Assembly (NCBI GenBank): GCA_010909165.1
Contig: VJWM01000044.1
Location: forward strand, 310,001-374,000
Source: Anthoceros angustus
Lineage: Eukaryota; Plantae; Anthocerotophyta
Reading direction: 5' to 3'
DNA: 64,000 nucleotides
Within the stretch, counting starts at the first letter, position 1, and every line of letters starts with the position of its first letter. The notes under the pieces are model-generated. The model made no database searches, was not told the DNA's origin, and worked only from the letters and a program-made list of their open reading frames with translations. The translations under genes and the position numbers were made by a program. Positions 3,115 to 57,804 of the stretch are shown here, in pieces.

Positions 3115-3166
3115 TCCTCGTTCGGCTTTTGTTCGCGACTTCAATGTCTTCCCCTTGATGGGTCGC

Positions 3167-5750: not shown

Positions 5751-6382
5751 CAGCAACTTCTCCACCTTGCCTTTTGACGGTAGCCTTCTCACCTCGCGCC
5801 TCTCACAATCGCCTCCTCGAGCACCTCCACTCGCCTGGATCCCCTCCGAACTCCTTTCCGGCCATCGCTCATGCCCCTAGCTCGCTGGATGCCCCCTCGC
5901 TCCTCGCCAGTTCGCTCTCCCCTCCGCCTGTCGGCCCAGCCGCTCGCCTTCCTTCTTGGCAACTCCACTTACTCCCTCGGCCCCGCCCACTGCGGTTCGC
6001 TGGCCGTTCAAAACCACGGCTAACGGGTTTGCGGTACATGCAAATCGCCTTAATGGCGCTCCTCCTCTGGGCGCCACGTGTCCGGTTCAAAACTCCAGCC
6101 ATTTTCCATCTACAACTTAACTAGCCCTTTTGGCATATATAGCCATGCGGAACCTAAATAATTCAAGGCCAAGGAACTTCCTATCCCCAATATTCCTACT
6201 CCCCATGGTCCAAGGAACTTTCGGAACCTATCATGCCTATATATGCTTCTATCTACCCATACTTCCCGATCGAACCTCCTCAGTGCCGATTCGATTAAGT
6301 CCGAACTCCCTCGGACGTCCTACCATCTTCCTACATTTCTATCGACCTACCTACTACACTGAACCCGACTATTCATCCTTGG

Positions 6383-14626: not shown

Positions 14627-15879
14627 TCCTCGTTCGCTGCTTTTGTTAGCCTCGCGGCTTCAATGTCTTCCCCTTGATGGGTCGCTTAGCCTTGCCCACC
14701 TCCGAGTCTTCTCCGGGACTATGCTGGTAACGCCTCGTCGGCCCCTCGGTGGTAGGTCTTCCCGTGGTAGGAGGTTCCATTCCTCCTACTCGTTCATCCT
14801 CGATGGGTTCCTCCCCTCTCTCGTCTTCTTGGTAGGTTCGATCCCAAGAGATTTGGTTCGGATTGTTTGCGAGTCGTTCCTCTCACTCTCTCACTCTCGT
14901 CATTCGCGGTCTACTTGTCCTCGGTGTGGGCAACAAAGCGGTGTTATGCGTTTGGGTTATCGGCCCACGCGCTCCACGCCTTCGAGATTCCCTCCACCTC
15001 AACACTCTCCTGCCAACTACGATCAATTCACTCTACAACGACACACCCATAGCCAACCTCTTCACCATTCTCAAAAGAAACATAGCTCACGGACCACATA
15101 CGGACTCACTTCATTCGATCCCCAAATCTAACTCTACTCATAGCCGCGGTTGCGCCTCCCTTGCGGCTGCAGGGTGGACTAGCGGGTATTTCTCTCGGGC
15201 GATTGCGTACGAACACAGCGGCGTAGTCGGCCGATCACCCTGCGGGGGCCACCCAACAAACACAAGCACATCCAACAACAATCTTTCACGAGAGGAGGAG
15301 CTGCGTTGGCGAACCCCACGCGAGGGGCCTCCGAGAACCCCACCCTTCGCCTTCTCGTCGCTTGGCGGCGGTCAAGCACACACACAAAGGGATGCGCCGG
15401 AGGCGAAGAATGCATGACAAAGCAAGGTGGTGTTTATTCATTCTTCCACCCTCCCTTTTATAGGTGGGGAGTCGGTAGCCACTCGTGCTAGTTTAATGCT
15501 AGGCGACTTGCCAAGTCCAACAATAGGACTCTTGTCGCCCCTTAATCCTCTCGGCTCGATCCGGCTCACCTTGACCGAATATCCTACATCTATCTGCCAC
15601 TCTTAAATACTCACACTTCCCAAGGTGTGCACCACTTGGGACAAAACGTCCTCTTGAAAAGGTCTCTGACATCCCTCGTTCGCTGCTTTTGTTAGCCCTC
15701 GCGGCTGTCTTCCCCTTGATGGGTCGCTTAGCCTTGCCCACCTCCGAGTCTTCTCCGGACTATGCAGTAGCACGCCTCGTCGGCCCCTCGGTGGTAGGTC
15801 TTCCGTGGTAGGAGGTTCCATTCCTCCTACTCGTTCATCCTCGATGGGTTCCTCCCCTCTTCTCGTCTTCTTGGTAGGC
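13783..15879. repeat. Tandem duplication of ~1.05 kb covering most of the LTR
   Basis: 13783-14834 is repeated at 14835-15879. The junction CTTCTTGGTA-GGTTCG-ATCCCAAG uses GGTTCG microhomology. Confidence 0.85.
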
Positions 15880-18800
15880 GGTTCGTCTCCTACCTCTTTG
15901 GATCTTGCTATGGGGTACCTTCCCTCACGGCTGGGTTTCGTGCCGGAGGTACCCTTCCTTCGGTCACCTCCTCCTCTTCAGCAGTTCCTACGAGTAGGAA
16001 CTTTGGTAGGTACCATCCTACCATCGGTCTCTTCCTCCCGGCATAGCTCCACCGTCTCGGGAGGTTCTCTTGGCGTCATGGTGCTTCTTGACTCGCTCGC
16101 TCGGCTATGTCTAGACTGCCTTTCCTTGTACCAACTCAAAGTTTTGACCTCCGGCGCCATTCCACTTGGCGTCGAGCGTGGTCCTTTCTTCGTCTTCCTC
16201 CATGGCGTTCCTCAATCGCTTCGAGGAGGTTGTTGTAGTAGGTCGCCACCCTACCACTCTCCTTCTTTTGTGCGTCCATGATCACGGACCCTTAGTGGGA
16301 TGGCCTTTTCGTCCCACCGGCGATTTGTCACTCCTACCAATGCGGCCTCTTTCTCCACTACCGCTCCTCCAACTCCAGGCAAGCCTCCCAATCTCCTTAT
16401 CTTTCTCCATGGCTTCCATCGCCATGCGTTTCACTATGGCGATCGCCTCGCTTTGCTCCTCGAATGACCAAGACCCTCCAAAGATCGTTGGGCCATCAAA
16501 ACTTCCTTCCGGGTTCCTTGCCTCCGTTTCATAGGCGTGGGTAAGGTCGGCCTTCTTCGTTCTTTGCTCCAAAAGTTCTCTCGTGTCTGAGCTCCTCTTT
16601 GTGACCCTTGGTCACATTGTCCCATCCTTGTCGTTCCTTCACCAAGGCCGTATTTTCCCTTGTAATGCTCCTTCCGTTGCTCCATGGCAACTAACTTCTT
16701 CGTAGGAGGTCCTTCTCGTCTTCAAGGTCCGGGGCCTTGCTAGGGTAGCTTCCTTGCCTCCTCCTTGCTGCGTTCGATGTGTCCTACCCTTGCTAGGGTA
16801 GCTTCCAACTTTCCCGCCTCCTTCTGGCGGTTTCCAACTCCTCACCCTCTTGGCTGATTTTGCCTCTGTCCTAAGACAGTCAATCATTTCCACACATTCA
16901 CCAACTTGGTGGTCATCTGTCGCTCTTTGGCGGATCTAGCAGTGTGTTGCTTCTCGGAGGTGGTTTTGAGCTCCTCTCAATTTCTTCATCCTCCGGCTCC
17001 TTTAGGTCTCGAAGTTCGGCCCGCCACCTCGACACGGTCCACTAGGGCGTCCATAGATCCTGCGCCCACTTCCTTGACTCGGCAACTACCCTCTGTAGGA
17101 TGCCGGCTTCTCAACACTTCCTCACTCCTCCTGGTGCGTGGGTCACCAACGTTCCTCGGCGTTCTTCTCCGTCCACGCCTCAAGTCTTGTTACTACTTCT
17201 TGGTGGGAGGTAAAGCTCCCGTAGGTCCTCCGTCCTCCACAGGTCCTCTGAGGTTCACTCCTACCGGTGTTGTCGGCCTTCCAATCCTCAACCCTCACAG
17301 TAGGTGGTCTCGTATCCTTTCCTCCTTCCTCCGTAGGAGGTGCTTCTATGGCCTTCTTCCCTTTCTCTTGTTGGGTTCCGATCCCGAGGCCTCATGTTGG
17401 TTCGCGGGCGTGGCGGTCTCTTGCCCAGGGCCTCATCTGTCTCTTCATCCTCAGGGCCGTGATGGCTCTCCTTCCGCTACCCTCACGAGTAGCTTCTATC
17501 TTGGCTTCTTCCAGCTCGTTGTAACCTCCTCCCTCGATATAGGTGTACGAGGAAGGTAGAGACAAAGCGATTCTTGCTCCTCCATCACCAAATGGTTTGT
17601 GCAACCCTTTGTTCATCTGAGAATGGTGGCCCAATCCACCAACTTCACGACATCTCATACATCATCATTAAATGGGAATTTCCAGTCGTCTTCCTTGCGC
17701 CGTTAGTCCAGCCATATCTTGGCGAATAAATTCCACTTCCGCTCCTTGAACAAAGAGATCCTCCAGCCATTGCCTTGCGACCATACTTCCTCCTTTGGTC
17801 GTAGGAACATGCTCATAACCTCCTCGGGATCGATTCTTGGAGGCTGAGCTGGAATGATCCCTCCCTTGTGGGCTTCCGGTATCAAATCGTATCACGGAAA
17901 TGCCGTACCTTCCACATCCCGGGATGACTTGATTGTCGCATCCTCGAGGCGGCGTCTTGGTCACTCTCATTCGTCGCGCACACTCGAACCAAGGCGGGGC
18001 TCTGCCAGTGCCAAGTACCATTCCATCTTCATCTCGGGCGTGGCGCTCGAGCGCCTCAAATCTCGAGGTGAAATTTGGGCGGCCTACACTCGAACTCGGG
18101 GTGGGTGTTTCTTACCTTTTCCCTTGTGGGCGGTGTGGCGGAGGTTTCCTCCCGTGGGAGTACCCCGTTCCCGTCCTCACTATCTTTACCATCGCAGAGC
18201 ACACACAAGGATAGCAAAATTGGAGAGATTGGAGTAATCTATCGGGCTAAGAGTGGAGAGCAAAGAGGTGGTGGTTTGGGTGAGACAGCGGCAAGGGGAG
18301 TTCTTCCGGCTCCTCGGCCTCGGCCTCAACGCAACCACTAAGAGGTGGCCTTGGCCCCTTCAATCTCCCTCCAGAACTTCTCCACCTTGCTCGCCTTTTT
18401 GATCTGGTAGCCAAGCTCACCCCTCGGCGCCTCTACAATCGCCTCCGCTCGAGCACCTCCACTCGCGCGCCTTGCGGATCCCCCTCAGAACTCCTTTCCA
18501 ATCGCTCATGCCCCGCTAGCTCCGCTCGATGGCCGCCTCGCTCTCTCGCCTTGAGTTCGCGCTCCTTGACTGCAGCGCTGCAATCGGTGAGGCGCCGCTC
18601 ACTTCTTGCCTTCCTTCTTGGCGCAACTCCACTTACTCCCTCGGTAGCCGACTGCGGGTTCGCTGGCGCCCGTTCAAAACCACAGCTAACCGAGTTTGCG
18701 GTACATGCAAATCGCCTTAATGGCGCTCCTCCCTCGATGGCCGCGTGTCGGTTCAAAACTCCTGTAGCCATTTTCCATCTACAACTTAACTAGCCCTTTT

Positions 18801-21800
18801 GGCATATATAGCCATGCGGAACCTAAATAATTGAAGGCCAAGGAACTTCCTATCCCGAATATTCCTACTCCCCATGGTCCAAGGAACTCGAACCTATCAT
18901 GCCTATATATGCTTCTATCTACCCATACTTTCTACCCGATCGAACCTCCTACGGCACGCCGATCTGCTTAAGTCCCGAACTCCTCGGACGTCCCTACTAT
19001 CTTCCTACCTTCTATCGACCTACCTACTACCACCGCCTCGAACTTATTCATCCTTCGCGCTGCCTCTCCGCCTTGGGTGACCAAAATTGCTCCACACGCT
19101 GTCCGCCAGTGATTCTTCCAGGCTCACCACCGTCTCCCTGCGGGCCACCTCCTGTCCTCGGATCTCCTCCCGAAGCATCTCCGCCACTTCTCGAACCATC
19201 CGGTGGAAACCGGGGTGTTGCCTTGGGTGGGTTCTGCTTCTCCTGCTATCATTTCAGAGGTTTCGGTCGGGTGATTCTCCGCAAAGCCGCCCGATTCAAC
19301 TCGCCTTCTTGGTGGGAGGTAAAGCTCCCGTAGGTCCTCCGTCCTCCACAGGTCCTCTGAGGTTCACTCCCTACCGGTGTTGTCGGCCTCCTCAACCCTC
19401 ACAGTAGGTGGTCTCGTATCCTTTCCTCCTTCCTCCGTAGGAGGTGCTTCTATTTTCTTCCCTTTCTCTTGTTGGGTTCCGATCCCGAGGCCTCATGTTG
19501 GTTCGCGGGCGTGGCGGTCTCTTGCCCAGGGCCTCATCTGTCTCTTCATCCTCAGGGCCGTGATGGCTCTCCTTCCGCTACCCTCACGAGTAGCTTCTAT
19601 CTTGGCTTCTTCCAGCTCGTTGTAACCTCCTCCCTCGATATAGGTGTACGAGGTAGAGACAAAGCGATTCTTGCTCCCTCCATCACCAAATGGTTTGTGC
19701 AACCCTTTGTTCATCTGAGAATGGTGGCCCAATCCACCAACTTCACGACATCTCATACATCATCATTAAATGGGAATTTCCAGTCGTCTTCCTTGCGCCG
19801 TTAGTCCAGCCATATCTTGGCGAATAAATTCCACTTCCGCTCCTTGAACAAAGAGATCCTCCAGCCATTGCCTTGCGACCATACTTCCTCCTTTGGTCGT
19901 AGGAACATGCTCATAACCTCCTCGGGATCGATTCTTGGAGGCTGAGCTGGAATGATCCCTCCCTTGTGGGCTTCCGGTATCAAATCGTATCCGGAAATGC
20001 CGTACCTTCCACATCCCGGGATGACTTGATTGTCGCATCCTCGAGGCGGCGTCTTGGTCACTCTCATTCGTCGCGCACACTCGAACCAAGGCGGGGCTCT
20101 GCCAGTGCCAAGTACCATTCCATCTTCATCTCGGGCGTGGCGCTCGAGCGCCTCAAATCTCGAGGTGAAATTTGGGCGGCCTACACTCGAACTCGGGGTG
20201 GGTGTTTCTTACCTTTTCCCTTTGTGGGCGGTGTGGCGGAGGTTTCCTCCCGTGGGAGTACCCCGTTCCCGTCCTCACTATCTTTACCATCGCAGAGCAC
20301 ACACAAGGATAGCAAAATTGGAGAGATTGGAGTAATCTATCGGGGCTAAGAGTGGAGAGCAAAGAGGTGGTGGTTTGGGTGAGACAGCGGCAAGGGGAGT
20401 TCTTCCGGCTCCTCGGCCTCGGCCTCAACGCAACCACTAAGAGGTGGCCTTGGCCCCTTCAATCTCCCTCCAGAACTTCTCCACCTTGCTCGCCTTTTTG
20501 ATCTGGTAGCCAAGCTCACCCCTCGGCGCCTCTACAATCGCCTCCGCTCGAGCACCTCCACTCGCGCGCCTTGCGGATCCCCCTCAGAACTCCTTTCCAA
20601 TCGCTCATGCCCCGCTAGCTCCGCTCGATGGCCGCCTCGCTCTCTCGCCTTGAGTTCGCGCTCCTTGACTGCAGCGCTGCAATCGGTGAGGCGCCGCTCA
20701 CTTCTTGCCTTCCTTCTTGGCGCAACTCCACTTACTCCCTCGGTAGCCGACTGCGGGTTCGCTGGCGCCCGTTCAAAACCACAGCTAACCGAGTTTGCGG
20801 TACATGCAAATCGCCTTAATGGCGCTCCTCCCTCGATGGCCGCGTGTCGGTTCAAAACTCCTGTAGCCATTTTCCATCTACAACTTAACTAGCCCTTTTG
20901 GCATATATAGCCATGCGGAACCTAAATAATTGAAGGCCAAGGAACTTCCTATCCCGAATATTCCTACTCCCCATGGTCCAAGGAACTCGAACCTATCATG
21001 CCTATATATGCTTCTATCTACCCATACTTTCTACCCGATCGAACCTCCTACGGCACGCCGATCTGCTTAAGTCCCGAACTCCTCGGACGTCCCTACTATC
21101 TTCCTACCTTCTATCGACCTACCTACTACCACCGCCTCGAACTTATTCATCCTTCGCGCTGCCTCTCCGCCTTGGGTGACCAAAATTGCTCCACACGCTG
21201 TCCGCCAGTGATTCTTCCAGGCTCACCACCGTCTCCCTGCGGGCCACCTCCTGTCCTCGGATCTCCTCCTGAAGCATCTCCGCCACTTCTCGAACCACAT
21301 CCGGTGGAAACTGGGGTGTTGCCTTGGGTGGGTTCGTTTCCTCTGCTATCATTTCAGGAGGTTTCTGGTCGGGTGATTCCTCTGGCAAAGCTGCCCGATT
21401 CAACTCGCCTTCCTTGGCTGGCTCTCTCTCCTTCGCGAGAGTCCCGTCCTCCGTATCCGTGGTGCTCTCTCCATTTTTCTTCCTCTTAATCGCTTCTCTC
21501 CTTTAGCTTCCTTCGGCCGGGTTGACACCTCCAAGACTTCCTCCAGTGTCTACCTTCTCCTCCTTAACCGAACACGCCTGCACCACCGCCCCTAAGTTCC
21601 TTCTACGCCTCTTCCCACTCCGCCACCGTGCATCTTCAATCAGACCGGGCCATGGTCTTAGGGAGAGGGGCGAGGCGGTCGCGTGGTTTCTGGCCGGGTG
21701 GCGTAGCGCCAGATCCTCGGCGAGGGTTCCGGACCTGGTGCCCGCAGCCATCTGCCACGCTGCAATCTCGGCATGCTCAAAATCCACGTTACCTGCGAGT

Positions 21801-21932: not shown

Positions 21933-24229
21933 GATCAAGCCACCTGAAACCCGAGCTGGACTTTTGTGGCAGGAGAGGCATTTTGTCCGGATAGGGTGGT
22001 TTTCAGTCGAGTTCTAACCATCACCTTGCAACTTTCCTCAGATAGTTCATCGAGAACTCCCGAGAATCCTTCCATTGATTTTTGTGAGCTTTTCAGACTA
22101 CCCGTAGATGTAGCAAAGGGGGAGACTCCCATTGGATTTCCCAGGTGTTGGGGGCTTGCAGGTTATTGGTTATAAAGAAGCCCCGGTGCGCCCCTTTTGT
22201 TGGGGAGGCATTTTCCAGCTCATGTAAATCGGGTAAGTGCCTCTCCGGGCCCTAGAGGCCCAAGCTCATCTCACCTTATCGGTATGTGATAGCTACTCCA
22301 AGGGCTTGGGTAATTATTTCGACATCGTAATGATTCTTGAGTCACATCCGGGAATTTGGGTTGTCTCACTGAGTCCAATCGTGGAAATGCTTTCAACACT
22401 ATTCCACGACGCCCATTTTCAACGAGAATCTGGGCGGATGTAGTGCCATAGTTAATTCCTTTTGTTCGTTCTTTTTAGTTCCCGTATAACTTTATTTCAT
22501 TAGCGCATGGTCCCTTAGTGGATGCGGTCTCGCGTCGACCCGCCGGCTGTGACTAGCCAAGGATCGTGTCATGTGACACTAATCTCAGCGCTTGGGTTTA
22601 GTGTTTGATTAGTGCTAATTAATCTACTTACTTATCTTTTAGTAAGTAAGAAGTATTAATTAATATAAAGTGCTTATATTAATTAAGCATTGATTAGTGT
22701 TAATTAAACATGGTTAGCAATAGCTAAGTGGATAAGCGCAAGTAATATGCTTTAGAATATTTTTTGCATATTATAGTGTATTCTTAGGATATTATCTTCC
22801 TTGCATATTATAGTGTATTCTTAGGATATTTTCGGTAGATGCTAATGCCAATAGGATATCTTATGAATATGCCAATGCCAAGGGCTAATATATATAGACC
22901 CTTTCACAGATGACAAGCTCATATTATAGCTTGTCCTCTAGATATGCAATGCAAAAGTGTTGTGATGAGGCCAAAACTATGACTGTGAGAGCGATGTGTG
23001 AGAAATTTGCGTATTGTTCTCGTGAAAAGAATGTGTTTATGCCACAACGTGCAAGCTACTCTATCCTATTGTTATTGGTTTGCACCTATATTTGCATATT
23101 AGATTTTTTTGCTTGGTTGTCTGTTGAGGAAGTGCTCATATGAATGCAAGTGCTTATCTCATGCGACAGATCCCGTGGGGGGTACCCTCTTTACCATGGC
23201 GGACTTCATGGCTCACTCCACAGCAGTCTCCACGGAGTCGGAATGTCTCTTTCCATCAAGTGCAGATGACACTCATATCTAGGTCCGGGGGACAAGGTCA
23301 AAGAACTTTTCAAAATTTTCTCCTTAGAGTTCTCCCTCTTTGGTTTGAAAGTCAAGATTTTGAAGTGCAAGATCCGGTCCCTGTTAAGAGTTACGCTCTT
23401 TCTTCAATATCCCGAGGAGCATATTGATTTTCGCAGGGACTCCGCATTTTAGAGGTCCCGGTGGGGCCCTCGGATTTTATTCAAGATTACATGGACACTG
23501 TTATGAAGAAGAATTTGGCTCACGACGGCAACCTCTCTCTATAAGAGGACCCACAGGTGGTGTTTGGTATCTTCTTTTCCAACTTCGCATGTCGCCTGAA
23601 GTACCTTCTCCGAACGGTGCCTCTCTCTTTGGCTTTTGTATCTAGCCTGAAGGATTTCAACAAGTAGATCATACAAGTGTTGGAGGACATAATCGGCCCA
23701 GATACCTTTCAATGGTAGCGGGATCTTGCAGTGTTGGCGTCCACCTTTGTTTTGGTGGCACAAGTCCACGCCACCCAGAGGCCTCGGCTTTGCCAGCCTT
23801 CTATGTACTGCAAGCTCTCTCTGCCCCTATCTTGGCTTCTCGCTTCCATATCAGGGATTTTTGCATCTTGAAGGGTTTCGTCTCAAGCGTTGAGGAAAGG
23901 GCCCTTCCCCCTCCAGGTGTTCTTAAGGTTGGCTAGGGGCCTCTTATCCACAAAGGCCAAGGATGCCTCTCTCCCTCATTCCTCGGGGACGGTATAAGAG
24001 GGCTTCAAGCCTATCTCTAGGAGAAGCAGTATGGGTAGGCGCATCAAGCTTTTCTTCTGGATTCCTCCATTCCTCGACTTGCAAGAGCTCGCCTTCGTTC
24101 TTGCTCGGTAAAGGGAGCAGTTCACAGTTTCACCCAACCTTGCATCCGTGCCTTCGGTGCAGGCACTTTTTTCTCTGCGATGAGGTTTTGCCTGGGGCTT
24201 ATCCAATCTCTGGCCTGTTCTCTTACATC
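21932..24229 (+). mobile_element. CRE-like (R2-group) non-LTR retrotransposon RT fragment, unit 1 (RLE part deleted)
   Basis: WISQVLGACRLLVIKK...GVRP..VGEAF, NAFNTI, GDPxGG and ADDTHI motifs. Interrupted by a solo LTR. Confidence 0.75.
22572..23161. mobile_element. ~590 bp AT-rich solo LTR-like insertion in the CRE RT (unit 1)
   Basis: TGTGACAC...TATCTCA termini (TG..CA) and a TATATATA box. It splits the RT just before the GDP motif. The TSD is not reliably readable. Confidence 0.7.
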
Positions 24230-24894
24230 GTTCGTTTCCCCCTCTCTCACATCCCCCCCAACCACCACATCAGAAGGAACCTCAAATTGAGATACCTTCA
24301 TCACTTGGTCTCCTCTCTCTTCTGCCCCTCTTCTCACGCCCAGACTCCGTTTTTACAAGGAGGAGTTTCGTTTCAATCTCCCCTTTGGCTTCCCTGCCCT
24401 GTCACACTATCTTAGTTCTCCCCTCTCCTTTAAACTCTGTACACTCATTGGTCAATTCCGAGTTATCTCCCATCACCTTTAGATCGAAACCGACCGCTAG
24501 CTCAAGCCCGCGCCTCCTCAAGAAGAATGGATTTGCAAGCTCTGTTCCTTGGGCCCTGAATGTGAATCACATTTTTTCTTCTATTGTCTCGCCTATGCTG
24601 ATATTCGGGCTCTTTTCAAGTGTGCTGATTTTTCCTTGTGCAAATTCTTCTCTTTTCACATTCCTTAGCTCTCTGGACTCTGTCTCTATGAGCTTTTTGA
24701 CCGTCGGCAAGCTTTGCTTGACTCCTTATAGGTTTCACCTCCTTTTTCCCTCTTTTTCCTCCTTTTAATCATCTCAAATATTTACTGTCTTTTTATTTCA
24801 GATGTACATATGTGTACTCGCTTTTTCCCCTCTTTTGCCCTATACTATCTTCGTCCCATGATGGTCCTTCCATCCTTAGCGGATATAAATAAAG

Positions 24895-24940
24895 CTGTTG
24901 TTGGCAAAGCGGAAGCGTGGTGGGCCCATAACCCATAGGT
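24895..24940 (+). pseudogene. 5' half of initiator tRNA-Met (nt ~1-46), unit 1; also 38816-38861 and 53036-53081
   Basis: 24902-24940 TGGCAAAGCGGAAGCGTGGTGGGCCCATAACCCATAGGT matches recalled plant tRNA-iMet nt 8-46 (TGGCGCAGCGGAAGCGTGGTGGGCCCATAACCCACAGGT) at 36/39 with the CAT anticodon intact. A TATAAATA motif lies just upstream. Confidence 0.85.
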
Positions 24941-24941
24941 T

Positions 24942-26483
24942 AACAGCGTCTGTGCAGAAATGGGTTTCTCCTGTCAAAAGAGGTTTTGGAAAAAATCCCA
25001 ACCCTATTTCGCCGGAAACTGAAGTTGGTTTGGTTTTTGTTGGTTTTTGTAGGTGTTCATCCATCGGTTTCGGGCATTCTACTCGGCACCACTTCTGTCA
25101 GTCATTTACATGCTGGCGCAGTCCTCGAGTTCATGGCGATTTAGGCGGTGTGATGAAGGGCTAGTGACCTCATTGTTCCATAATTTCGTCATGTCCGTAG
25201 TTTTTGCATTTTGTGTGGTTCTGCATGTTTTTGTATACCCGGGGGGCCTAGACGCGCATAAGTGAGTGCCTAAACAACGCTATGCACAATTTTTTGCACG
25301 TATTGTGCTAAAAGAACGCAAAAAATGATCTTCTAATGGGGAAACATGTCCTTTCGGAGCCCTAAGGATGTGTCGGAATTCCCGACAAAATAACAAGTAG
25401 CACACATCGGCGGAGGTTCACCTAGAACGCTCTCATATATCTATCTTATGCCCTAATGCGACGAAGAACACCCTCTCCCCTTTTTATCCTTTACGGTGTT
25501 TCCATCTCTTTCGACCGTGACCTAATACCGGGTTATCATCAAACATGCCAGGGGGGCTTAGCTGGGTGAACAAGTGCTGCACCAAGGGGCAAGGGGGCCC
25601 GGGTGCGCGCATCCGAGGTCAAGAAGGGCCTAGGAGCATGAACCCATTTGGTTCATGCCTCCTAATGCATTCTCAGACGGTTCATCCAAAGAAAAAGAGA
25701 AATCTAAAAATCCCAAAAGAATCCCAAAAGTCCAATTTTTGAGCGCGACTTGCCTAAAATTTTTGACAATTTTTAAATTTTTGGTATTTTTGATATTTTG
25801 TTATTTTAAAGGGTTCCTTCGACGCTTTTCAACCTTTTTGTGCACCTCCCTAATGTGGATATGTTCTTATCTTTACTTAGCCCTCATCTTTTTCTAGTGG
25901 TTAAAACTTTGAACTAGTAGTGAGAACCTTTTGCATCTTTTGAATCTTGAGACGTTTGGCATGGGCCCAGCTCCAAGTGCAAACCATGCCACTCTCATTC
26001 TTGCACTGCACGTGGATCAAGAGCATCAGGTGAATGAAGATATTATTGTCCCAATGTCTAAGAAACAAAGTCCAGTAAAATTCTCAAAGCGAGAGTATAG
26101 TCTTAGGATTGATTGGTATGAATGAAAGGTTGGTGCGCAAACAAGTTTGCGCACCAAAATTACGGCAAGCTCTAAAAATTCTAATCGTTTGTATACGTCC
26201 AACACTTGGCAATGATTGCCAGGTGTTGGAGCTTGTTTAGATGTAAGTGCGCGCATAAGTTTGCGCACGAATTCTGTATCTAGTTTGAAAGAAAAAGCTG
26301 AACGAGAATGAGGCTTTAAGTTTTTGCCACGTACTAGCAATCTACAATCTGAAATAACGTGTATCAAAACAATTATTCAAAAGGTTGTTGGGTGACATGT
26401 TTGCAGAGAAATACCAAAAAGGCTGATTATACTGCGGATTTCAAGGGGTTTAAGGAAAAACCCCTTTCTACACAGATGCTGTT
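24942..26483. mobile_element. ~1.55 kb non-coding insert with ~30 bp terminal inverted repeats, unit 1
   Basis: Left AACAGCGTCTGTGCAGAAATGGGTTTCTCC (24942-24971); right GGAAAAACCCCTTTCTACACAGATGCTGTT (26454-26483). No recognisable ORF. Confidence 0.75.
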
Positions 26484-26528
26484 GGTTGGCAAAGCGGAAG
26501 CGTGGTAGGCATATAACCCATAGGATGA

Positions 26529-26600
26529 TGTTGGTTGGCAAAGCGGAAGCGTGGTAGGCACATAACCCATAAGTCCGTGGATCGAAACGAGGCTTTGATA
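26529..26600 (+). pseudogene. Full-length (72 nt) degenerate tRNA-iMet followed by TTTT, preceded by another 5'-half copy (26478-26524)
   Basis: TGGCAAAGCGGAAGCGTGG...ATAACCCATAAGTCCGTGGATCGAAACGAGGCTTTGATA-TTTT aligns without gaps to recalled tRNA-iMet (…GGATCGAAACCTGGCTCTGATA). The acceptor 5' strand and T-stem no longer pair. Confidence 0.82.
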
Positions 26601-26639
26601 TTTTGATATAGTAGTTAAAGTTTTTAATAAGCTTTAAGT

Positions 26640-27400
26640 CTATATGAAAAAGACTACATGCAAGAATGATAGTTAAAGATTACATGCAGAAAGTAGTTAA
26701 CTTTTTAAGTAGCTTTAAGTATACATGAAAAATACTACATGCGAGAATGATGGTTAAAGATTACATGCCGTGCATTTATGGCTGGACTTTTCGACCATCC
26801 GATCATTTCTTCTCATGAAAAACATGCAAGGTGATACTCGAGTCTATGGCTCGACAATGGAAGCGAGCTGATTTCTTCTCATGAAAAATATACAAGACCA
26901 CCAGTTTAGCCAAATAGTAAGCTCTGCAAAACTAGACACACTGCAAAGTTTGCTATCCACGCACATTGCAAAGTTTGCTATCAATTTCTACCTTGTTATC
27001 TAGGCATAGTGCAAAGTTTGCTATCAACAAGGTAGAAGTAGTTAGAGACTGTGACTCCAATTCCAACTCAGAATATGGTGTGGTTCAAATTTCAGATGCC
27101 CATAATGGAAGGGAACAATTACGTGCAAGGATGATAGGTGGAGTCTATGGCTGGGCTTTCCATAATAAAAAGGGTGAGAGTCATAGGGTCACTTGTTCTG
27201 GAAACTGGTTCGGGCCGGATTCGTGAACAACGGAACGCGAGAACCCTACACTCTAACGCGTGTGCCGCCAGGCAGCATCCTGTGTGGGGATCCATTTTCA
27301 GCTAATGAAGCATGTACAAGCAGATACAGTCAAGTTAAAAAGAATACATGCCGCAAAGTCATTTTGCCGTGAAACTTTCCTACGGAGGAAAAAAAAACAC
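26640..27400 (+). pseudogene. Degenerate repeat region, probably PPR-derived; expanded in unit 2 (40560-41700) and unit 3 (54870-57540); paralogous piece upstream of GH9 (34600-34750)
   Basis: Recurrent FLLMKN(M/I)QD and [18 protein letters not shown] (PPR LF..M...VKP-like), MIGGVYGWAFHNKKGE and VRDxDSNSNSEY. The frame is conserved between paralogues. Confidence 0.35.
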
Positions 27401-27684
27401 AATTTACAGACAAATAGAAGAAGAGGGATTTGATTTAAGTCCACTAAGGACGGACTTCGTCATGAGACCTGGTACTTAACAACTTGTACCATGGTGTGCC
27501 TAAGCTACTTGCACCAAGGGCATCCACTCCCTTTAGGCACCCCATCTAAATACCGATCTAAGCTAGCATGCTTAATCACAGCGTTCTTATCAATTTGTGT
27601 GCATTTGGCGTTCTTATAAATACTCCAGCCAAGTTCCTCTTGGTAAAAGGCAAGATACTGTTGCTCCACAACAATATGGGACCC

Positions 27685-29560
27685 TTAGAGACACCGACTC
27701 CAAATCCAGCTGAGAATATCAAAAGTGGAGTCCAGAAGACCATCGGCTGAGCCACCTATCTGCTCTTAAGCTTGTTAGCCTGCAAGTCCTGCAAGAAATT
27801 GTACAGGTTAATAAAGTTTCAGCCTAGGTACAAGTCCCCGTTGTGGGAGAACCTGGCTGAATTTCAAGCGAATTACCTTTAAGGTACTTTTCCAAGATGC
27901 AAGTCTTAGGTCGACTTCGAAGGATGCCGAGCCCTCTGAGCTAGCAGCTTGGACAAACCTCAAACTATGCCTCGCTCAAAAATCTGGTTTTTCTGCGTGT
28001 TCTCACGCGTCTCTCAACCAAAGCTGAGTCCCCTGACTCTGCACCTGAAAGAGGCTAGCCCACCGGATGCCCAGTTCTGTACTAGGGTCTACGATAGCCC
28101 TTTGACAGTGTCTTCAGCTGTCCTTCGTTCATCTTCCTGTCAAACGAGGGCTTCAGACTGATGGAAAATGGTGGCCCAGTGCACTCACTACTTCCTATTG
28201 GACCCCTCTTTGCGTACACATATCAAACGAGTCTGTGTATTTCAGGAGGGAGGATGCACTTACCGAGATCGAGTCGTCTCCCTCCACCACCTCGGTGGAA
28301 AGCATAAGTCTCAGGTCCCATTCCGTGGCCCGAGATAGATCAGTAACCAGGTACCTGACCGGACGTCTCCTAAACTGCCAGAGTGCCAAGAGCATCAGCA
28401 AAGAGCTCTGCAATCCTACTAGGCGGACGAGACCATATGTTTTGAACACTGTAGATCATGAGAGTGTGCATTGTGTCAAGTGTAGACCTTGTCGATGGTC
28501 AAGGACTCGCCATGGGCCTTGCACTGGACCAAGAGAGGATGTCCAATTCCTTTTCGTAATCTGCAGGCCGACAATGTTGTGTCAGGGGTGACCATCGAGT
28601 TCAAGGTACCAGCTTCAGACACATTGTTACAGTATAATGTATACACCGGAGGAAGAAAGATACGAGTCACCTCTATGATGATAACTTCCTTCTCAACCGT
28701 GGGCTGCTTGTCCTCCTGAGATCGACAGGCAACCTCTTTCAGCCTGTCGAAATAATGTCGAGGAGTTTTGTGTCCAAAACTTTGAAGGTCGTGCAGGCCA
28801 ACGTTTTGGGCGACCCTCTCAAACTCCTCTTCAAGTTCAGTAAACGAGAAGGAAGGCAGACTTTCCAGTGTTTTTGGTCCCCTGCACAGGCGCGAGGGAG
28901 CACTGAGCTTCAAATTGCAGGGACAATGCAAAGTTTCAAAACTTTTGTGCATAACTCAAAAATGGGGCGTGAGCAGTGACGTCGATACTCCACGCGAGGG
29001 TAAAAGATCAATCGCCCAAAGCGCAGCCACAACAAAGGTCTCAGACGTCGGCCCGTCCGAGAGTCACTCGTGTCCGCACACGAGCTGGCAAACTCTTCGA
29101 GAGCTGCCTTCAAGTCCTGCTCCAGCTTGGACCGCAGTCGAAGGCCTTGAAGCGAGTGCAGCCTGATCCCGCAACCCCTGAGCCAAAGCTGGCGACGAGG
29201 CCGAAACCCAGGTTTAATTACAAGCCAGAAATCAATACGTGGATTGCAGATGCCATGATCAACCACAAGCTTTGCAAGCGTGGAACATGAACTGACAGAT
29301 ACCTCCATGAAATTCCTTCTGCTGAGCCAGAGCCGGAGCCGTAACCACGCTGAGCCGGCAGCAGCTGTCGTCATCGACGCGGAATCGAAGGGACTGGTCC
29401 ATCGGGGACAACATGTAAAGCTTGTTTATTGCGTTTGCAGAGTAGTTCAGCATCATCCCAATCCAAGGACGGAGAGGTCGTTCGTGGGACATCTGGAAAA
29501 GCTGGGCCGGTGGCAGATTGTGGCGCATCTTTTCGCAGATGTGGGGAATGTATTTCCCAT
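27685..29560 (-). CDS. Spliced gene for a conserved plant protein of unknown function (DUF7903-like, name recalled), unit 1
   Basis: Ordered motifs: (M)G.YIPH-like start, LNYSANAINKLY, LRPLLWLRFGRLIFY, SFGHKTPRHYFDRL, PDTTLSAC, VRYLVTDLSRATEWDLRLMLSTE, RAIVDPSTELGIRW, EVDLRL, then a GT-AG intron and last exon ending DILSWIWSRCL*. These parallel recalled angiosperm motifs ARFGKILF, VRHMVxDISCLDKNLDLRLML and SAILDPDVKGGLRWP. The start is tentative. Confidence 0.62.
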
Positions 29561-30091
29561 GCTAAGACTAGTCACTACAAAATCAAGGCTATGGACCTGG
29601 TCTTCGCCTGTCTCATGGAAACAAGTTGCCCTTTCCAGGGTTCTCTCAATGCCAGGTGAACGCTGCCGGATTCCTGAGAGAGAGCCAGAACGCTACGCTC
29701 CCGGACTTGTGAGAGTAAGAACCGGAACCTTCCGGATTTGAGAGAGCTGCGGATCGCCAGGCTTTACGGCTTCTATTGACGAGGCGCGTCGGGCACTAAT
29801 GATCAGATCTGTACATCCCCAACCGTGAGTTCGAGCGTGTTTAGGTAATTAACATAAAGCCAGTCGTCCCCTGTTGCCCGACTCCCTAGTGTAGGTACCT
29901 ACTCTCATCGGGTACTTCCCGCTTCACGCTCCGATAATTCAAATTGAATTCGCATTCACGGTCCGGCGACAGAAGCTAACCGCCACCTCTGCCAGACTCC
30001 AGCAACAGCCCCGCGAATTTATCCAGCCGTACTACGGTGGCTTACAATGATCCAACATGAAAGTTTGAGAGATCAGGTTTATCACCTAATA

Positions 30092-30611
30092 CAGTCCACC
30101 CCCTAATTGGGACTGGTTCGGAGTGCCTTTAGAGGTCCCATTAAGGGAGGTGTCCCGATTATATTTTCCTATTTAAAAATAATAAAATATTTTAAATTTT
30201 AAAAAAATAAAAAATACCCAAAAAAGAAAATTTTAAATTTTGATTGATAGGTTTCACTAAAAATAACTTTTACCACTTCTCTATATAGTTGTTTGAAAGC
30301 TAGCGCTCTCTAAGCAACATCAAAAACCTCTACCTACCATAAAGGAAAAAGCTTAGCTTAAGAGTCTTCAATCACACCTTAAAGTCTATTGTGCTTTGAA
30401 ATAATCGATTTTTTCTTTCATTTTTATTTTTATAGTAAAAAATTAGAAATCCCATTTAGGGAGAAACTAACATGAATGTATGTTTCAAAATGTCCCAATT
30501 ATCATTTAGGAAAAGTCCCATTTATTACATTGTAAACTAAAAGGAGTAGGATGGGAGGTCCCATTTAGAGAGGAATCCCATTTATAGAGTTCCCAATTAG
30601 GGGGCCGACTG
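30092..30611. mobile_element. Tc1/mariner-pogo-type MITE, unit 1
   Basis: TA|CAGTCCACCCCCTAATTGGGA ... TCCCAATTAGGGGGCCGACTG|TA: ~21 bp TIRs, TA TSD, AT-rich interior with repeated TCCCATTTA. Confidence 0.9.
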
Positions 30612-31430
30612 TATGTATCTGGCTTCAAACCTTGCAGAACAAAATCCTTTCGCACTTGATATCCAGCAAAGCCAACGATGAGGAACTCACACTAATCCGT
30701 GACATGGATGAAAATTAGGGCAAGCAAGTTGTAAGGGCAGCACGCAATGCAGAGAAACAACGTCTGCCCGCTTTTCTGAGGTTTATCATACTGGTGAGTG
30801 AGAAACAATGATACCGATGAACAAGTGAGGCTGTTAAACCTGATCTCTAAAATGCTGAAACAGTGACACTGATGCACAGGTGAGAGTGGTAGACCTGATT
30901 TCACTCATCAGTGTCAAAAGTTTAGACATCAGGCTTATCGTACTGATGAGTGAGATGAGGTTTACTAGTCTCACAGTTGTTGCACCTAGGATGTCAAGGA
31001 CAGTGATGAAAATAGCTGTGCCCTGTTGGCATCGGTAGATGAACACTTAAGGAATTGGAAAAAGATTGAAGTAAATTCTACCTGTCCACCTTACTTACAA
31101 TGAGGCAGCCTGCTGAACAAGATGTCTTTCTAAACTTGTGACCTGTCCGCGGCAACAGCACTTCTAGCTTGAACTAACCTTCAGATCTTGAAAGACCTGC
31201 AAAACAGATGGGACAGTTCCATGTCCTGTGTGTTATTGCTGAACACCTTGCTACAGCTTGACCGCAACACACCGGATTGCCATATGCATGTGACCATCAG
31301 TAAGCTCAGTCTGTCCGTTGAGGAACGCATTCCATGTTGCCACGATTGCAGCTCTCCCACACTCACACAAGCATGAAAAGGAGACACAGATGTTGCCCTC
31401 CAGTTGCATACTTTGTTTTCTGACCAACTC

Positions 31431-31860
31431 CTACCGTTGATACTTCCTTGCTTTCTCCCTCACATGGTTTATAATCTTGATCATGTTCTCTGCTTCATCT
31501 AATTGCCCTGTACGCCCAAGGAGATCCATCATGCAATCGCAATGCTCATTAGTAGGTTGATGCTGCATGCGGTTCAACCATGGAATCATAGCCAAGCTGT
31601 TAAATATCCGGCATGCATTTTCCAGTTCGCCACATTTGGCATATATGACCACCAGGCAAAATATTGCCCAACAGTATAGTGTTTGGCAACTGTCCTCCTC
31701 CCACAGGCTGAAACTATGCAGCTGCCTGTCCTTCTGTAAGGCACCAGCGCTTGTTTGTACAGGCCTTCATAGTACATGACGATCCATTTAGCAGGATCCA
31801 GACAAATGTTCTCCGCAAGTACTCTCCCTTCTGGCTTGCAGCGCTTATTCTTTTGATGAG
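31431..31860 (-). pseudogene. PLS-class PPR gene remnant, unit 1
   Basis: YAKCGELENACRIFNS and EHCDCMMDLLGRTGQLDEAENMIK; internally deleted. Confidence 0.8.
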
Positions 31861-32372
31861 GAAGCAATAAAACTTCCAGAGAAAACAGAGTCTGCTAGCC
31901 TAGTAGGCTGCCTTGAATAACAGTATGCAGTTTTCCTTTAGTTTCCACGGTGTTCAGTGCTATGGGCTGAGTGCACTTTTTAGCTGCACCTTGGGGACCA
32001 AACGTTCAGGACGGTGGGGCAGCCTCATGAACCTCCCCATCCGACACACTTATGGAGTAGTTACGAGCTTCAAGTTAGTGCACAGGGGATCAAAATTGCA
32101 CACACCTTGCGATGTGCAGTGTCCAGAGTACGATCAAGAGGATAGATTAGTATCAAGAATGAATTGGTACAGCCTCAGGTATACCATGGTTATGAACGTG
32201 TTTACATATAAGGGCAGCACAGGGGGCAATCCATCCATGAATGGGCCAGGTGCGCTCCGGCCACAGCTCTACCTATCTAATGCTGCTACTGGGTTTCAAG
32301 ACTAAGCATTACAGATATGGTACAAGCGAGTAGAGAAACGACTCCAAGATGTGAAGCAAGGGCAGCCTGGCA

Positions 32373-34095
<1,723 letters not shown>

Positions 34096-34747
34096 GCTTC
34101 AGCGAGCGCTGCAAAGCTGCTGCAGATGGAAACCAGGTCTGAGCTGTTGAGGAAGAAGATGGCGGAGAGATGAGCAGAATGCAATGCAAGAAACGTGGTG
34201 GAGGATGCCATTTATTGCAGCTGCAGGGGGAATGCGCCTGCTGCGTGTTGATGGAAGCCGCAAATGCGCCTGGCGTTCGCCTCGGTGCTCAGGACTGGGA
34301 TCTGAGCCACAGTTCATGGCGCCTTCTCCCGACCGTGAAAGCCGCTGGTGTGTCCCTTCACCCGTAACTCCGGTACCCGCTGTTGCGGCAGTTGCGGGGG
34401 ACCAAACTGGTTTCCACAACCTGTATGCTGAAGGCCGCTGATGTTAGATTCAGGGCAGCCCGTTTTCACTGGCATCGGACCGGCGACATCGCAGTCCAAG
34501 TGCGACAGAAGTCTATCAAGAATTATTGGTCGTTTGCCACTTGCGAAAGACCTCAATTCTAGGACATATTACTTTTATACGTAGTTTGAAGTACACATAA
34601 ATATATGGGAGAAATTATATGCAAGGATGAAGGCTAAAGTTTATGCCTGGACTTTTGATGATAAAAGGGTGGAAGTGGTGTCCCCATTGGAGATCTATTT
34701 TTGCTAATGAAGCATGTACAACAAGATAAAGTTCATTAAGCGTGCAA

Positions 34748-37377
34748 ATGTGGCAAAGGGGAGACTCCATTGATTTCCAGTGTTGGGGGCTTGTAGGTTA
34801 TTGGTTAAAAAGAAGCCCACGCCCGGGGTGCGCCCTGCAGTTGTTGGGGAGGCATTTTTTCAGCTCATAAGCCGTAGTATCGCCCTCCGGTTTGGGAGCG
34901 ATTCAAGCTCATCTTAGCCCCATCGGTATGGGATAGCTAATCCAAGGGCTTTGAGTCGTTGGCTTTGACATCGTAATGACTCTTAAGTCACATCCGGACT
35001 GGGTTGTCCTACGGGTCAATGTGGAAATGCTTTCAACACTATCTCCACGACGCCCATTTTCAACGAGCTGAAGGATGCGGGCGGGTAGCTGGCAAGTTAA
35101 TTCCTTTTGTTCGTTCTTTTTTAGTTCCCCGTATAACCTGTACTATTAGCATGGTCGCTCAGTGGGTGGGGTCTCCATGCTTGACTTGACGACAGGGACT
35201 AGCCAAGGGGATCTGTCATGCCGTGTGACACTAATCTCAGCGCTTGGGTTTAGTGTTCGATTAGTGCTAAGTAATCTACTTACTTATCTTTTAGTAAGTA
35301 ATAAGTATTAATTAATATAAAGTGCTTATATTAATTAAGCATTAATTAGTGTTAATTAAACATGGTTAGCAATAGCTAAGTGGATAAGTACACGTAATAT
35401 GCTTTAGAATATTCTTTTCATATTATAGTGTATTCTTAGGATATTATCTTCCTTGCATATTATAGTGTATTCTTAGGATATTTTTGGCAGATGCTGATGC
35501 CAATAGAATATCTTATGAATATGCCAATGCCAAGGGCTAATATATATAGAGCCTTTCACAGAGGACAAGCTCATATTATAGCTTGTCCTCTAGATATGCA
35601 ATGCAAGAGTGTTGTGAGGAGGCCAAAACTATACTCTGAGAGCGATGTGTGAGAAATTTGCGTGTTGTTCTCGTGGGGAGAATGTGTTTGTGCCACGACG
35701 TGCAAGCTACTCTATCCTATTGTTATTGGTTTGCACCTATATTTGCATATTAGATTTTTTTGCTTGGTTGTCTGTTGAGGAAGTGCTCATATGAATGCAA
35801 GTGCTTATCTCATGCGACAGATCCCATGGGGGGTGCCCTCTTTACCATGGCGGACTTCATGGCTCTGTCCACAGCAGTCTCCACGGAGTCGGAATGTCTC
35901 TTTCCATCAATTGCAGATGACACTCATATCGTAGGGCCCGGGGATAAGGTCAAAGAACTTTTCAAAATCTTCTCCTTAGAGTTCTTCCTCTTTGGTTTGA
36001 AAATCAAGATTTCGAAGTGCAAGATCTAGTCCCTGTCAAGAGTTACGCTCTTTCTTCAATATCCCGAGGAGCATATTGCTTTTCGCAGGGACTCCGCATT
36101 TTAGAGGTCCCGGTGGGGCCCTCGGATTTTATTCAAGATTACATGGACACTGTTATGAAGAAGAATTTGGCTCACAACGACAACCTCTCTCTATAAGAGG
36201 ACCCACAGGTGGTGTTTGGTATCTTCTTTTCTAACTTCGCAGGTCGCCTGAAGTACCTTCTCCGAACGGTGCCTCTCTCTTTGGCTTTCATATCTAGGCT
36301 GAAGGATTTCAACAAGTAGATCATACAAGTGTTGGAGGACATCATCGGCCCAGATACCTTTCAGTGTGGCGTGGGGGATCTTGCACGGTGGCAAGCGTCC
36401 CTGCTTGTTGCTTTTGGTGGCACAAGTCTACTGGCCACAGAGGCCTCGGCGCCGACAGCCTTTCTATGCAGCTGCAAGCTCTCTCTCTGCCCGTATCTTG
36501 GCTTCTCGCTTCCATATAAGGGATTTTTGCATCGTGAAGGGTTTCGTCTCAAGCGTTGAGGAAAAGGCCCTTCCCCCTCTAGGTGTTCTTAAGATTGGCT
36601 AGGGGCATCTTATCCACAAAGGCCAAGGATGCCTCTCGCCCTCGTTCCTCGGGGACGGTCTAAGGGGGCTTCAAGCCTATCTCTAGGAGAAGCAGTATGG
36701 CTAGGCGCATCAAGGGAAGGGAGCAGGTTCCTGGTTTCTGACCCAACTTTGTATCCAGGCCTTTCGAATTGCACCGACTTCTTTTTCTACTGTGATGAGG
36801 TTTTGCCTGGGCCTTATCCAATCTCTGGCTTGTTCTCTTACATCCTGCAGCTATGGGCCCACCTCCTCCCCTCTCCCCCTCCCACACTGGGACCCACTTA
36901 GCGGGTAGCACATCGCATTCCATGATGCCGTCCAAGATGTCATGTTCTCAATGTCCAAAGAGTGCGGAATCTTTCCTTTCAGGCCCATATACATTGCATG
37001 GCATGTCTCTCAAGGTTGATTTATTTTTGATCGGAGGGGACCAAGTCTATATTGTAGATGTGGTTGTAACAGATCCTATTCGGGACACCGTCAACGGGCA
37101 TGTCATCATCAACCCTCCGAACTGGGAGACGGAGGGATGCGCGATAGCGAAGGCTCACAAGTACACCTCCATGCAGGAAAGCCATGTATTCATTCCTCTT
37201 GCTATCGAGACTCACGAGACCATGGACAAGGATTTTTTGAAGTTTATCAAGGGTTGCACTAAAACCTACCACATCAGTAAGAATGGTGTAGGTCTCCCCC
37301 TTTCCTATGTGGCGGCTTTCTTTCAGCAACATCTTTTCATCTCCCTACAGAGCACGGTGGCAAACGCAAAATTTTAG
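34748..37377 (+). mobile_element. CRE-like non-LTR retrotransposon, unit 2: RT plus restriction-like endonuclease C-terminus
   Basis: RT motifs NAFNTIS, DPMGGALFTMA and PSIADDTHIVG. C-terminus KVDLFLIGGDQVYIVDVVVTDP...AKAHKY...FIPLAIETH...FISLQ (RLE-type). Confidence 0.8.
35224..35812. mobile_element. Solo LTR-like insertion (unit 2)
   Basis: Same sequence and insertion point as 22572-23161. Confidence 0.7.
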
Positions 37378-38690: not shown

Positions 38691-38862
38691 CATCTCAAAT
38701 ATTTACTATCTTTTTGGTTCAGATGTACATATGTGTACTCGCTTTTTCCCCTCTTTTGCCCTATACTATCTTTGTCCCATGATGGTCCTTCCATCCTTAG
38801 CGGATATAAATAAAGTTGTTGTTGGCAAAGCGGAAGCGTGGTGGGCCCATAACTCATAGGTT

Positions 38863-40412
38863 AACAACGTCTGTGTAGAAAGGGGTTTCTCCTGTCAAAA
38901 GGGGTTTTGGAAAAAATCTCAACCCTATTTCGCCGGAAACTGAAGTTGGTTTGGTTTTGTTGGTTTTGTAGGTGTTCATCCATCGGTTTCGGGCATTCTC
39001 GGCTCGGCACCACTTCTGTCGAGTCATTTACACGCATTGGCGCCTTGTACTCAAGTTCATGGCGATTTAGTCGGTGTGATGAAGGGCTAGTGACCTCATT
39101 GTTCCATAATTTCGTCATGTCGTAGTTTACGCATTTTGTGTGGTTTTGTATGTTTTGTATACCGGGGGCCTAGGCGCATAAGTGCGGCGTCTAAACAACG
39201 CTATGCAAACTTGTGCATTGTGCAAAAAGAGCAAAATGATCTTCTAATGGGGAAACATGTCCTTTTGGAGGTCGAGGATGTGGAACTCCCAACAAAATAA
39301 CAAGTAGTAGACATCGGCGGAGGTTCACCTAGACCGCTCTCATATATCTATCCTATGCCCTAATGCGACGAAGAACACCCTATCCCTTTTATCCTTTACG
39401 GTGTTTAGTCTCTTTCGTGACCTAGTACCGGGTTATCATCAAAACATGCTAGGGGCCGGTGGGTGAACAAGTGCATGCACCAAGGGCAGGGGTGCGCCAG
39501 GCATGAGGGGTGGGGCCTGCATGCAGGCACTGTGCAAGAGGGCAGTGCGCACGCGCACCAAGGTCAAGAAGGGCCTAGGAGCATGAACCCATATGGTTCA
39601 TGCCTCCTAGTGCATTCCCACACGGTTTATCCAAAGAAAAAGAGCAAAAGTCTAAAAACCCCAAAAATCACAAAGTCCAATTTTTGAGGCAAGTCTTGGC
39701 CCACGACAATTTTTATTTTTGAATTTTTTGTATTTTTTTGATATTTTATTGTTTTAAAGGGTTCCTTTCGACGTTTTCAACCTTTTTGTGCACCTCTAAT
39801 GTGGATATGTTCTTATCTTTACTTAACCCTCATCTTTTTCTAGTGGTTAAAACTTTGAACTAGTAGTGAGAACCTTTTGCATCTTTTGAATCTTGAGGCG
39901 TTTGGCATGGGCCCGGCTCAAGTGCAAACCATGCCACTCTCGTTCTCGTACTGCACATGGATCAAGAGCATCAGGTCAATGAAGATATTATTGTCCCAAA
40001 GTCTAAGAAACAAAGTCCAGTAAAATTCTCAGAGCGAGAGTATAGTCTTAGGATTGATTGGTATGAATGAAAGGTTGGTGCGCAAATGCGCACCAGAATT
40101 ACAGCAAGCCCTAAAAACTCTAAACGTTTGTATACGTCCAACACCTGGCAATGATTGCCAGGTGTTGGAGACTGTTTAGATGTAAGTGCACGCATAAGTT
40201 TGCGCACGAATTCTATGTCCAGTTTGAAAGAAAAAAGCCGAGCGAGAATGGGACTTTAGGTTTTGCCACGTACTTGCAATCTACAATCTCAAATAACGTG
40301 TATCAAAACAATTATTCAAAAGGTTGCGGGTGACATGTTTGCGAGAAATACCAAAAGGCTGATTATAATCACGGATTTCAAGGGGTTTGGAGAACCCTTT
40401 CTACGAATCTTT
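38863..40412. mobile_element. TIR insert, unit 2 (right TIR corrupted by indels)
   Basis: Left TIR at 38863-38892; interior collinear with unit 1. Confidence 0.65.
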
Positions 40413-40457
40413 GGTTGGCAAAGCGGAAGCGTGGTAGGCATATAACCCATAGGATGC

Positions 40458-40529
40458 TGTTGGTTGGCAAAGCGGAAGCGTGGTAGGCATATAACCCATA
40501 AGTCCGTGGATCGAAACGAGGCTTTGATA
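40458..40529 (+). pseudogene. Degenerate tRNA-iMet, unit 2 (anticodon reads TAT)
   Basis: 72 nt, same alignment, followed by TTTT; preceded by a 5'-half copy. Confidence 0.82.
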
Positions 40530-57624: not shown

Positions 57625-57804
57625 TACTTGCACCAAGGGCATCCACTCCCTTTAGGCACCCCATCTAAATACCGATCTAAGCTAGGATGCTTAATCACGG
57701 CGTTCTTATAAATGTGTGTGCATTTGGCGTTCTTATAAATACTCCAGCCAAGTTCCTCTTGGTAAAAGGCAAGATACTGTTGCTCCACAACAATATGGGA
57801 CCCC

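Follow-up and report, generated by a model that had tools for sequence, protein, structure and literature searches.

A non-autonomous inverted-repeat element flanked by a 47-bp direct repeat in a decayed initiator tRNA-Met sequence of Anthoceros angustus

Introduction

Dada DNA transposons, which encode a DDE transposase, target tRNA and snRNA genes, carry no terminal inverted repeats, make target-site duplications (TSDs) of 6–7 bp and are represented by many independent insertions (PMC3706591). Plant non-autonomous transposons with terminal inverted repeats (TIRs), whether MITE-like or deletion derivatives of hAT, Mutator, PIF, Sola and similar elements, have flanking repeats of 2–11 bp and several copies with the same ends. 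Prokaryotic integrative elements, which use tRNA genes as tyrosine-recombinase att sites, leave a direct repeat of tens of tRNA bases on both sides and one rebuilt gene-like copy; they carry an integrase, have no inverted ends and usually rebuild the 3′ part of the gene. Templated insertions primed at microhomologies, in which a copy of the nearby flank lies at a junction bounded by the microhomologies, have also been documented (PMC2943611).

Here, we analyse a locus within a 64,000-nt stretch of Anthoceros angustus DNA (contig VJWM01000044.1, positions 310,001 to 374,000; hereafter the window), in which a 1.54-kb block separates two copies of a sequence derived from initiator tRNA-Met (tRNA-iMet). 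Its closest fit is an ordinary non-autonomous TIR element, and we assign it to the level of TIR elements only. The block resembles the plant elements in its near-perfect 31-nt inverted ends, its lack of coding capacity, its A/T-rich and hairpin-rich interior and the dispersed-repeat nature of that interior. By contrast, its flanking repeat measures 41–47 bp, and no copy with the same ends was seen beyond the local array in one DNA sequencing run (X1). With Dada it shares a position inside a Pol III small-RNA gene and a short end-related sequence that recurs in the target near the junction, but the 31-nt inverted ends, the 47-bp repeat, the single event and the lack of a transposase or domain-bearing open reading frame (ORF) place it outside that group. 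It also recalls templated insertions, with the 6-nt motif GCTGTT and the bases of the insertion site as the bounding microhomologies, although the template here is separated from the copy by the element, at a distance of 1.5 kb, and a copy length of about 41–47 nt is at the long end for such fillers. Unlike the prokaryotic elements, it lies in a eukaryotic host, has no recombinase and repeats the 5′ part of the tRNA sequence.

Results

Structure of the locus

The structure begins with a tRNA-iMet-like 5′ piece, which is followed by the non-coding block with inverted ends, by the 5′ piece again, by a 49-bp tandem copy (26475–26571 in unit 1) and by a full-length tRNA-like piece that runs into TTTT (Table 1). 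This is the order of parts that the initial annotation of the window had described, and every one of them was located in unit 1. A self-comparison revealed three tandem units of about 14.3 kb together with a local 1.5-kb duplication. In all three units the junctions coincide and the 49-bp tandem copy is present. They are thus paralogues that descend from one ancestral locus and record one event, not three observations, so that the array seen earlier does hold three copies, but copies of a single locus within a larger tandem repeat, one of which (unit 2) has lost part of its right inverted end.

Table 1. Features of the locus, with positions counted from the first letter of the window
Feature	Position	Strand	Remarks
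Unit 1, whole structure	24894–26604		
TATA-like A/T run directly before tRNA-like copy 1 (unit 1)	24884–24893	+	−11 to −2 of the expected tRNA nt 1 (24895)
Direct-repeat copy 1: 6-nt leader GCTGTT, then tRNA-iMet-like nt 8–46 (24902–24940)	24894–24941	+	CAT anticodon and GGG/CCC stem kept; 35/39 vs published initiator tRNA
Insert, 1,542 bp, non-coding, non-autonomous element with inverted ends	24942–26483	.	ORFs without Pfam match; interior high copy in X1
Left terminal inverted repeat, 31 nt	24942–24972	+	
Right terminal inverted repeat, 31 nt	26453–26483	-	Last 6 nt (26478–26483) shared with the start of direct-repeat copy 2
Direct-repeat copy 2, tRNA-like nt 8–45 at 26487–26524	26478–26524	+	3 further changes in the anticodon arm
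Second 49-bp unit continuing into full-length tRNA-like piece (nt 8–73 at 26536–26600)	26525–26604	+	A box, initiator-type B box/T loop, TTTT at 26601–26604; no cloverleaf fold
Unit 2 copy, whole structure	38815–40533	+	Left inverted end 38863–38893; right end partly deleted
Unit 3 copy, whole structure	53035–54846	+	Inverted ends 53083–53113 and 54695–54725
Extra partial copy: right end of insert and decayed tRNA-like pieces	56123–56400	+	Product of the local 1.5-kb tandem duplication

Inverted ends and interior of the insert

The two ends of the insert are complementary at 27/31 positions in unit 1 and 28/31 in unit 3, confirming as 31-nt ends the 30-bp TIRs that had been proposed. Once unit-private changes were removed by taking, where units differ, the state shared with the other arm, complementarity rose to 30/31, while the best of 200,000 random pairs reached 19/31. 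Within the window, the end motif is confined to the borders of the insert and has no additional copy. The interior is A/T-rich with many hairpins, and Pfam searches with ten ORFs from the insert and ten from the array yielded no match above the noise level, which, with the dispersed-repeat interior described below, supports the earlier reading of a non-coding insert that splits a tRNA-iMet-derived sequence.

Short near-perfect GC-rich palindromes of one motif type (GCGCA..TGCGC) lie inside the insert at 26130–26157, 26198–26230, 26247–26271 and 53403–53419 / 53757–53774; they are expanded in unit 3 and may be binding sites or tiny nested repeats.

Candidate flanking signatures of particular superfamilies were compared with the borders. 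For a hAT-type 8-bp TSD, only 5/8 positions agree by eye, which is not convincing, and the TTAA of piggyBac or Kolobok elements is present on the left side only. In units 1 and 3, each inverted end is bordered by the tetranucleotide GGTT, but this also belongs to the 47-bp repeat. A small nested MITE with a later big insert, as suggested by low-copy ends around a high-copy interior, was rejected, no inner TSD or inner inverted ends having been found.

Copy number in sequencing data

In the neighbouring segment 27581–28400, X1 contigs show 1–3 differences per 230–370 bases, indicating that the run derives from the same or a very close organism. Summed contig depth ranges from 138 to 2,942 inside the insert, from 16 to 98 in the left flank bins (24402–24902) and from 3 to 55 in the right flank bins. 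The sole depth reported at an inverted end comes from one contig at position 24946, in the left end, with a value of 10.2. High depth begins between that position and 25038, where it has reached 800; near the right side it is 284 at 26416 and has fallen away within bin 26406–26572, and the bin that holds the right end and the 5′ pieces averages 43. The high copy number of the interior in X1 marks it as dispersed-repeat material, consistent with a mobile-element origin.

Among the X1 contigs and in the window, neither a family sharing these ends nor another insertion site was seen; the X1 contigs are short and were placed at 80% likeness, so that diverged ends could have escaped notice. Metagenome contigs scanned with the 19-nt core of the inverted end yielded two matches, each sharing only about 20 bases with the window, and protein searches with ORFs spanning the left junction and the part of the insert with the highest copy number returned no homologue. 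One X1 contig connects 24940 with 27433, its shorter arm measuring only 22 bases. A further run, X2, which is possibly RNA, has no depth over 24569–27407, which is no proof of silence.

The tRNA-like pieces

The search pattern for tRNA-iMet was nt 8–46 of the human initiator tRNA-Met as printed in PMC12775451, with four positions left open. It matches copy 1 in each unit with 0–1 mismatches and the full-length copy of unit 1 with 3 mismatches, where chance would give none; copy 1 in unit 1 agrees with the human sequence at 35 of 39 positions, and its CAT and the three G-C pairs of its anticodon stem are intact. Initiator-type primary sequence is present in the GGG/CCC anticodon stem, CAT and the A54/A60 T loop, and the initiator-type T-loop decamer occurs three times, only in the three full-length copies, against a chance expectation of 0.03. 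At their 3′ end, the full-length copies have the discriminator A and then TTTT, which marks the sequence as gene-derived and not a retro-copy of mature tRNA. For the same stretch, an LTR-retrotransposon primer site is ruled out, as the tRNA-like 3′ end continues into TTTT and not CCA.

Likeness to the initiator tRNA begins at nt 8; nt 1–7 do not match the tRNA and are unable to pair with the 3′ strand, so the acceptor stem is absent, and two T-stem pairs are broken as read by eye. The initial annotation had given tRNA-iMet nt 1–46 with an intact CAT anticodon; this holds from nt 8 onwards but not for the first seven positions. It had also placed a TATA upstream, and the A/T run found there sits directly before copy 1 and not at the usual −30. 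ARAGORN called 0 tRNA genes in the window, relaxed thresholds included; Rfam gave no tRNA match there at the gathering score or at E values up to 10, and the full-length piece folds no better than shuffled sequence (z = 0.1 to 0.7), with no cloverleaf. The A box, initiator-type B box and TTTT of the cassette that was thought to be regenerated downstream are present in sequence, but the cassette does not fold as a tRNA. The tRNA-iMet-like sequence is a dead gene or pseudogene and no working tRNA. The break at nt 7/8 is common to all copies and is therefore older than the repeat.

Over the tRNA-like flanks, summed X1 depth is 3–98, comparable to the neighbouring low-copy flank bins. A dispersed tRNA-derived SINE, which the initial annotation had named as a competing source of these flanks, is ruled out by their low copy number in X1.

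The long direct repeat

BLAST aligns 24894–24939 with 26478–26524 over 47 columns at 91.5%, the copies differing by 3 substitutions and 1 indel. The duplication of about 40 bp of the tRNA 5′ half that had been described is thus present, although it also takes in 6–7 bases of the leader and shares 6 nt with the right inverted end. This overlap is the hexamer GCTGTT, found at 24894–24899 and again at 26478–26483, where the start of the repeat coincides with the last six bases of the right inverted end. The leader before copy 1 therefore equals the terminus of the transposon itself, and one 6-nt identity remains however the borders are drawn; it could be chance, at roughly 1 in 1,000. In addition, tRNA nt 45/46, the position of the insertion site, is the end point of two duplications: the one that spans the insert and the later 49-bp tandem copy. 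The 49-bp tandem copy carries 8–9 bases of the transposon end, and copies 2 and 3 share changes that are absent from copy 1.

The two inverted ends differ at about 1–2 positions in 31, whereas the units are 97–100% alike at the repeat/insert structure. The divergence of the repeat copies and of the ends, set against this likeness between units, indicates that the insertion, the repeat and the 49-bp copy all predate the amplification.

Surroundings of the locus

G+C makes up 49% of the window, which contains neither a long domain-bearing ORF nor an Rfam family. Positions 1–22000 form a distinct, G+C-richer block (about 55%) with internal repeats of its own (2296–6417 vs 14832–19088 at 87%; 17196–19315 vs 19305–21421 at 98%) and ORFs that have no Pfam match. 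The 14.3-kb units (22108–36700 and the two that follow) are mosaics, being 98–100% alike over 27436–34750 but only about 50–97% alike over 22108–27400, with unit 1 as the outlier, a pattern indicating conversion or unequal exchange, or else components that differ in age.

Immediately downstream of the tRNA-like piece, every unit has nested tandem repeats of 81–85 bp and about 361 bp (26610–26768, 40539–41306, 54852–55011 and 56380–56538). The local 1.5-kb tandem duplication comprises 54575–56130 and 56123–57632, and at its joint 8–9 shared bases link a high-copy stretch with the right portion of the insert. At 27408–27574, about 150 bp reach a summed contig depth near 55,000 in X1 and near 3,700 in X2; the stretch recurs in other units at about 41700 and 56000–57500, is adjoined by a GAA-type run and an A run, has no 5S or tRNA match in Rfam and, from its appearance, may be a very abundant minus-strand SINE.

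Discussion

The reading that we favour, to which we give a probability of about one half, is one old insertion of an ordinary short-TSD non-autonomous TIR element, after which the left flank would have been copied anew by way of microhomology, a slip would have added the 49-bp copy and the segment would have been amplified. A 1.54-kb cut-and-paste element with 31-nt inverted ends would have inserted at the variable-loop position (nt 46/47) of a tRNA-iMet-derived pseudogene whose acceptor stem had already been lost. The 47-bp repeat would then be a templated re-copy of the left flank and most likely no target-site duplication: a DNA end or nascent strand finishing in the last six bases of the transposon may have paired with the same hexamer before copy 1, copied the 5′ piece as far as the insertion site and rejoined the right flank through the short original TSD. 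A second slip would have produced the 49-bp tandem copy, and the 14.3-kb segment carrying the locus would later have been amplified in tandem and partly homogenised.

The shared hexamer is a prediction of microhomology priming, and templated re-copying accounts both for it and for the common end point of the two duplications, whereas a widely staggered cut, that is, a true long TSD, accounts for neither. The region is moreover prone to duplication, with tandem duplications of 49 bp, 81–85 bp, 361 bp, 1.5 kb and 14.3 kb, and the joint of the 1.5-kb duplication has a microhomology of 8–9 nt, which favours re-copying. We infer the short original TSD and the re-copying from this one locus, and several points count against them: neither an empty site nor a second copy fixes the true ends and the TSD, the putative short TSD is no longer readable and needs two transitions, and a reach back of 1.5 kb exceeds that of typical templated fillers.

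It is also conceivable, though unlikely, that the 5′ piece was already tandemly duplicated with a 41-bp period and that the transposon landed exactly at the joint with an ordinary 4-bp TSD (GGTT). The GGTT beside both inverted ends in units 1 and 3 would fit this course, as would the many local tandem duplications of the region and the later second duplication of the same segment; however, GGTT also arises from the start of the repeat and the tRNA sequence by themselves, and three coincidences would be needed: the element must have hit the joint exactly, two duplications must have ended independently at one tRNA position, and the transposon end must happen to share its hexamer with the leader. 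The initial annotation had instead proposed an element that targets tRNA-iMet and regenerates an A box/B box/terminator cassette downstream; a family of this kind would duplicate 41–47 bp of target by widely staggered cuts. That the repeat adjoins both ends of the insert, that repeat and inverted ends look about equally old, and that an end-like hexamer in the target recalls the sub-terminal repeats of Dada, which recur in its target gene (PMC3706591), speak for such a family. We nevertheless consider it improbable and find no support for a true 40-bp TSD or for tRNA-iMet targeting: the paralogous units record a single event, a second copy of the inverted ends was not seen in X1 or the window, the target had by then lost its acceptor stem and become a pseudogene, the rebuilt cassette has no tRNA fold, and a TSD of about 40 bp leaves the hexamer identity and the shared end point of the duplications unaccounted for. 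To our knowledge, DDE transposons make TSDs of 2–11 bp, none of the described superfamilies coming near 40 bp. A further variant, in which a plant DNA transposon family recognises an end-like hexamer before tRNA-iMet-type sequences, with either a duplication of about 40–47 bp or a tRNA 5′ half of its own, and rebuilds the Pol III cassette behind it, we regard as distinctly improbable; if true, it would be the first tRNA-targeting TIR element in plants and would have a TSD far longer than that of any DDE family.

A long repeat could also reflect an element that itself carried the tRNA 5′ piece and entered by recombination within the homology, in the Campbell-type manner of prokaryotic islands in tRNA genes, leaving the homology as a direct repeat. 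Integration of this kind classically leaves a tRNA-gene insert between repeats that are tens of bases long, and changes common to copies 2 and 3 but absent from copy 1 would be expected if one copy had come with the element. Such an entry is very improbable here, given the lack of a recombinase and of coding capacity, near-perfect inverted ends that point to a transposase, and the low copy number in X1 of the bin holding the right end and the 5′ pieces; we know of no such element in plants. The mobile element might even be dispensed with altogether, the insert being spacer DNA between two tRNA-like pieces that was rearranged by deletions and inversions, with the inverted ends as a by-product. 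The heavy rearrangement of the region and ends that appear unique to this array in X1 would agree with this, but we find it scarcely credible, because ends complementary at 30/31 positions, where random pairs reached no more than 19/31, coincide precisely with the direct-repeat borders, and because the interior belongs to a high-copy dispersed repeat.

On present evidence, the locus stands alone, is decayed and shows no sign of function. If the re-copying of the left flank proves true, the locus would show cleanly, in a natural setting, how a very long target-site duplication can be mimicked when repair or template switching acts at a transposon end, and it would call for caution in transposable-element annotation. 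If, on the other hand, further copies with the same long repeat lay in initiator-tRNA genes, they would represent a new type of target-specific plant DNA transposon.
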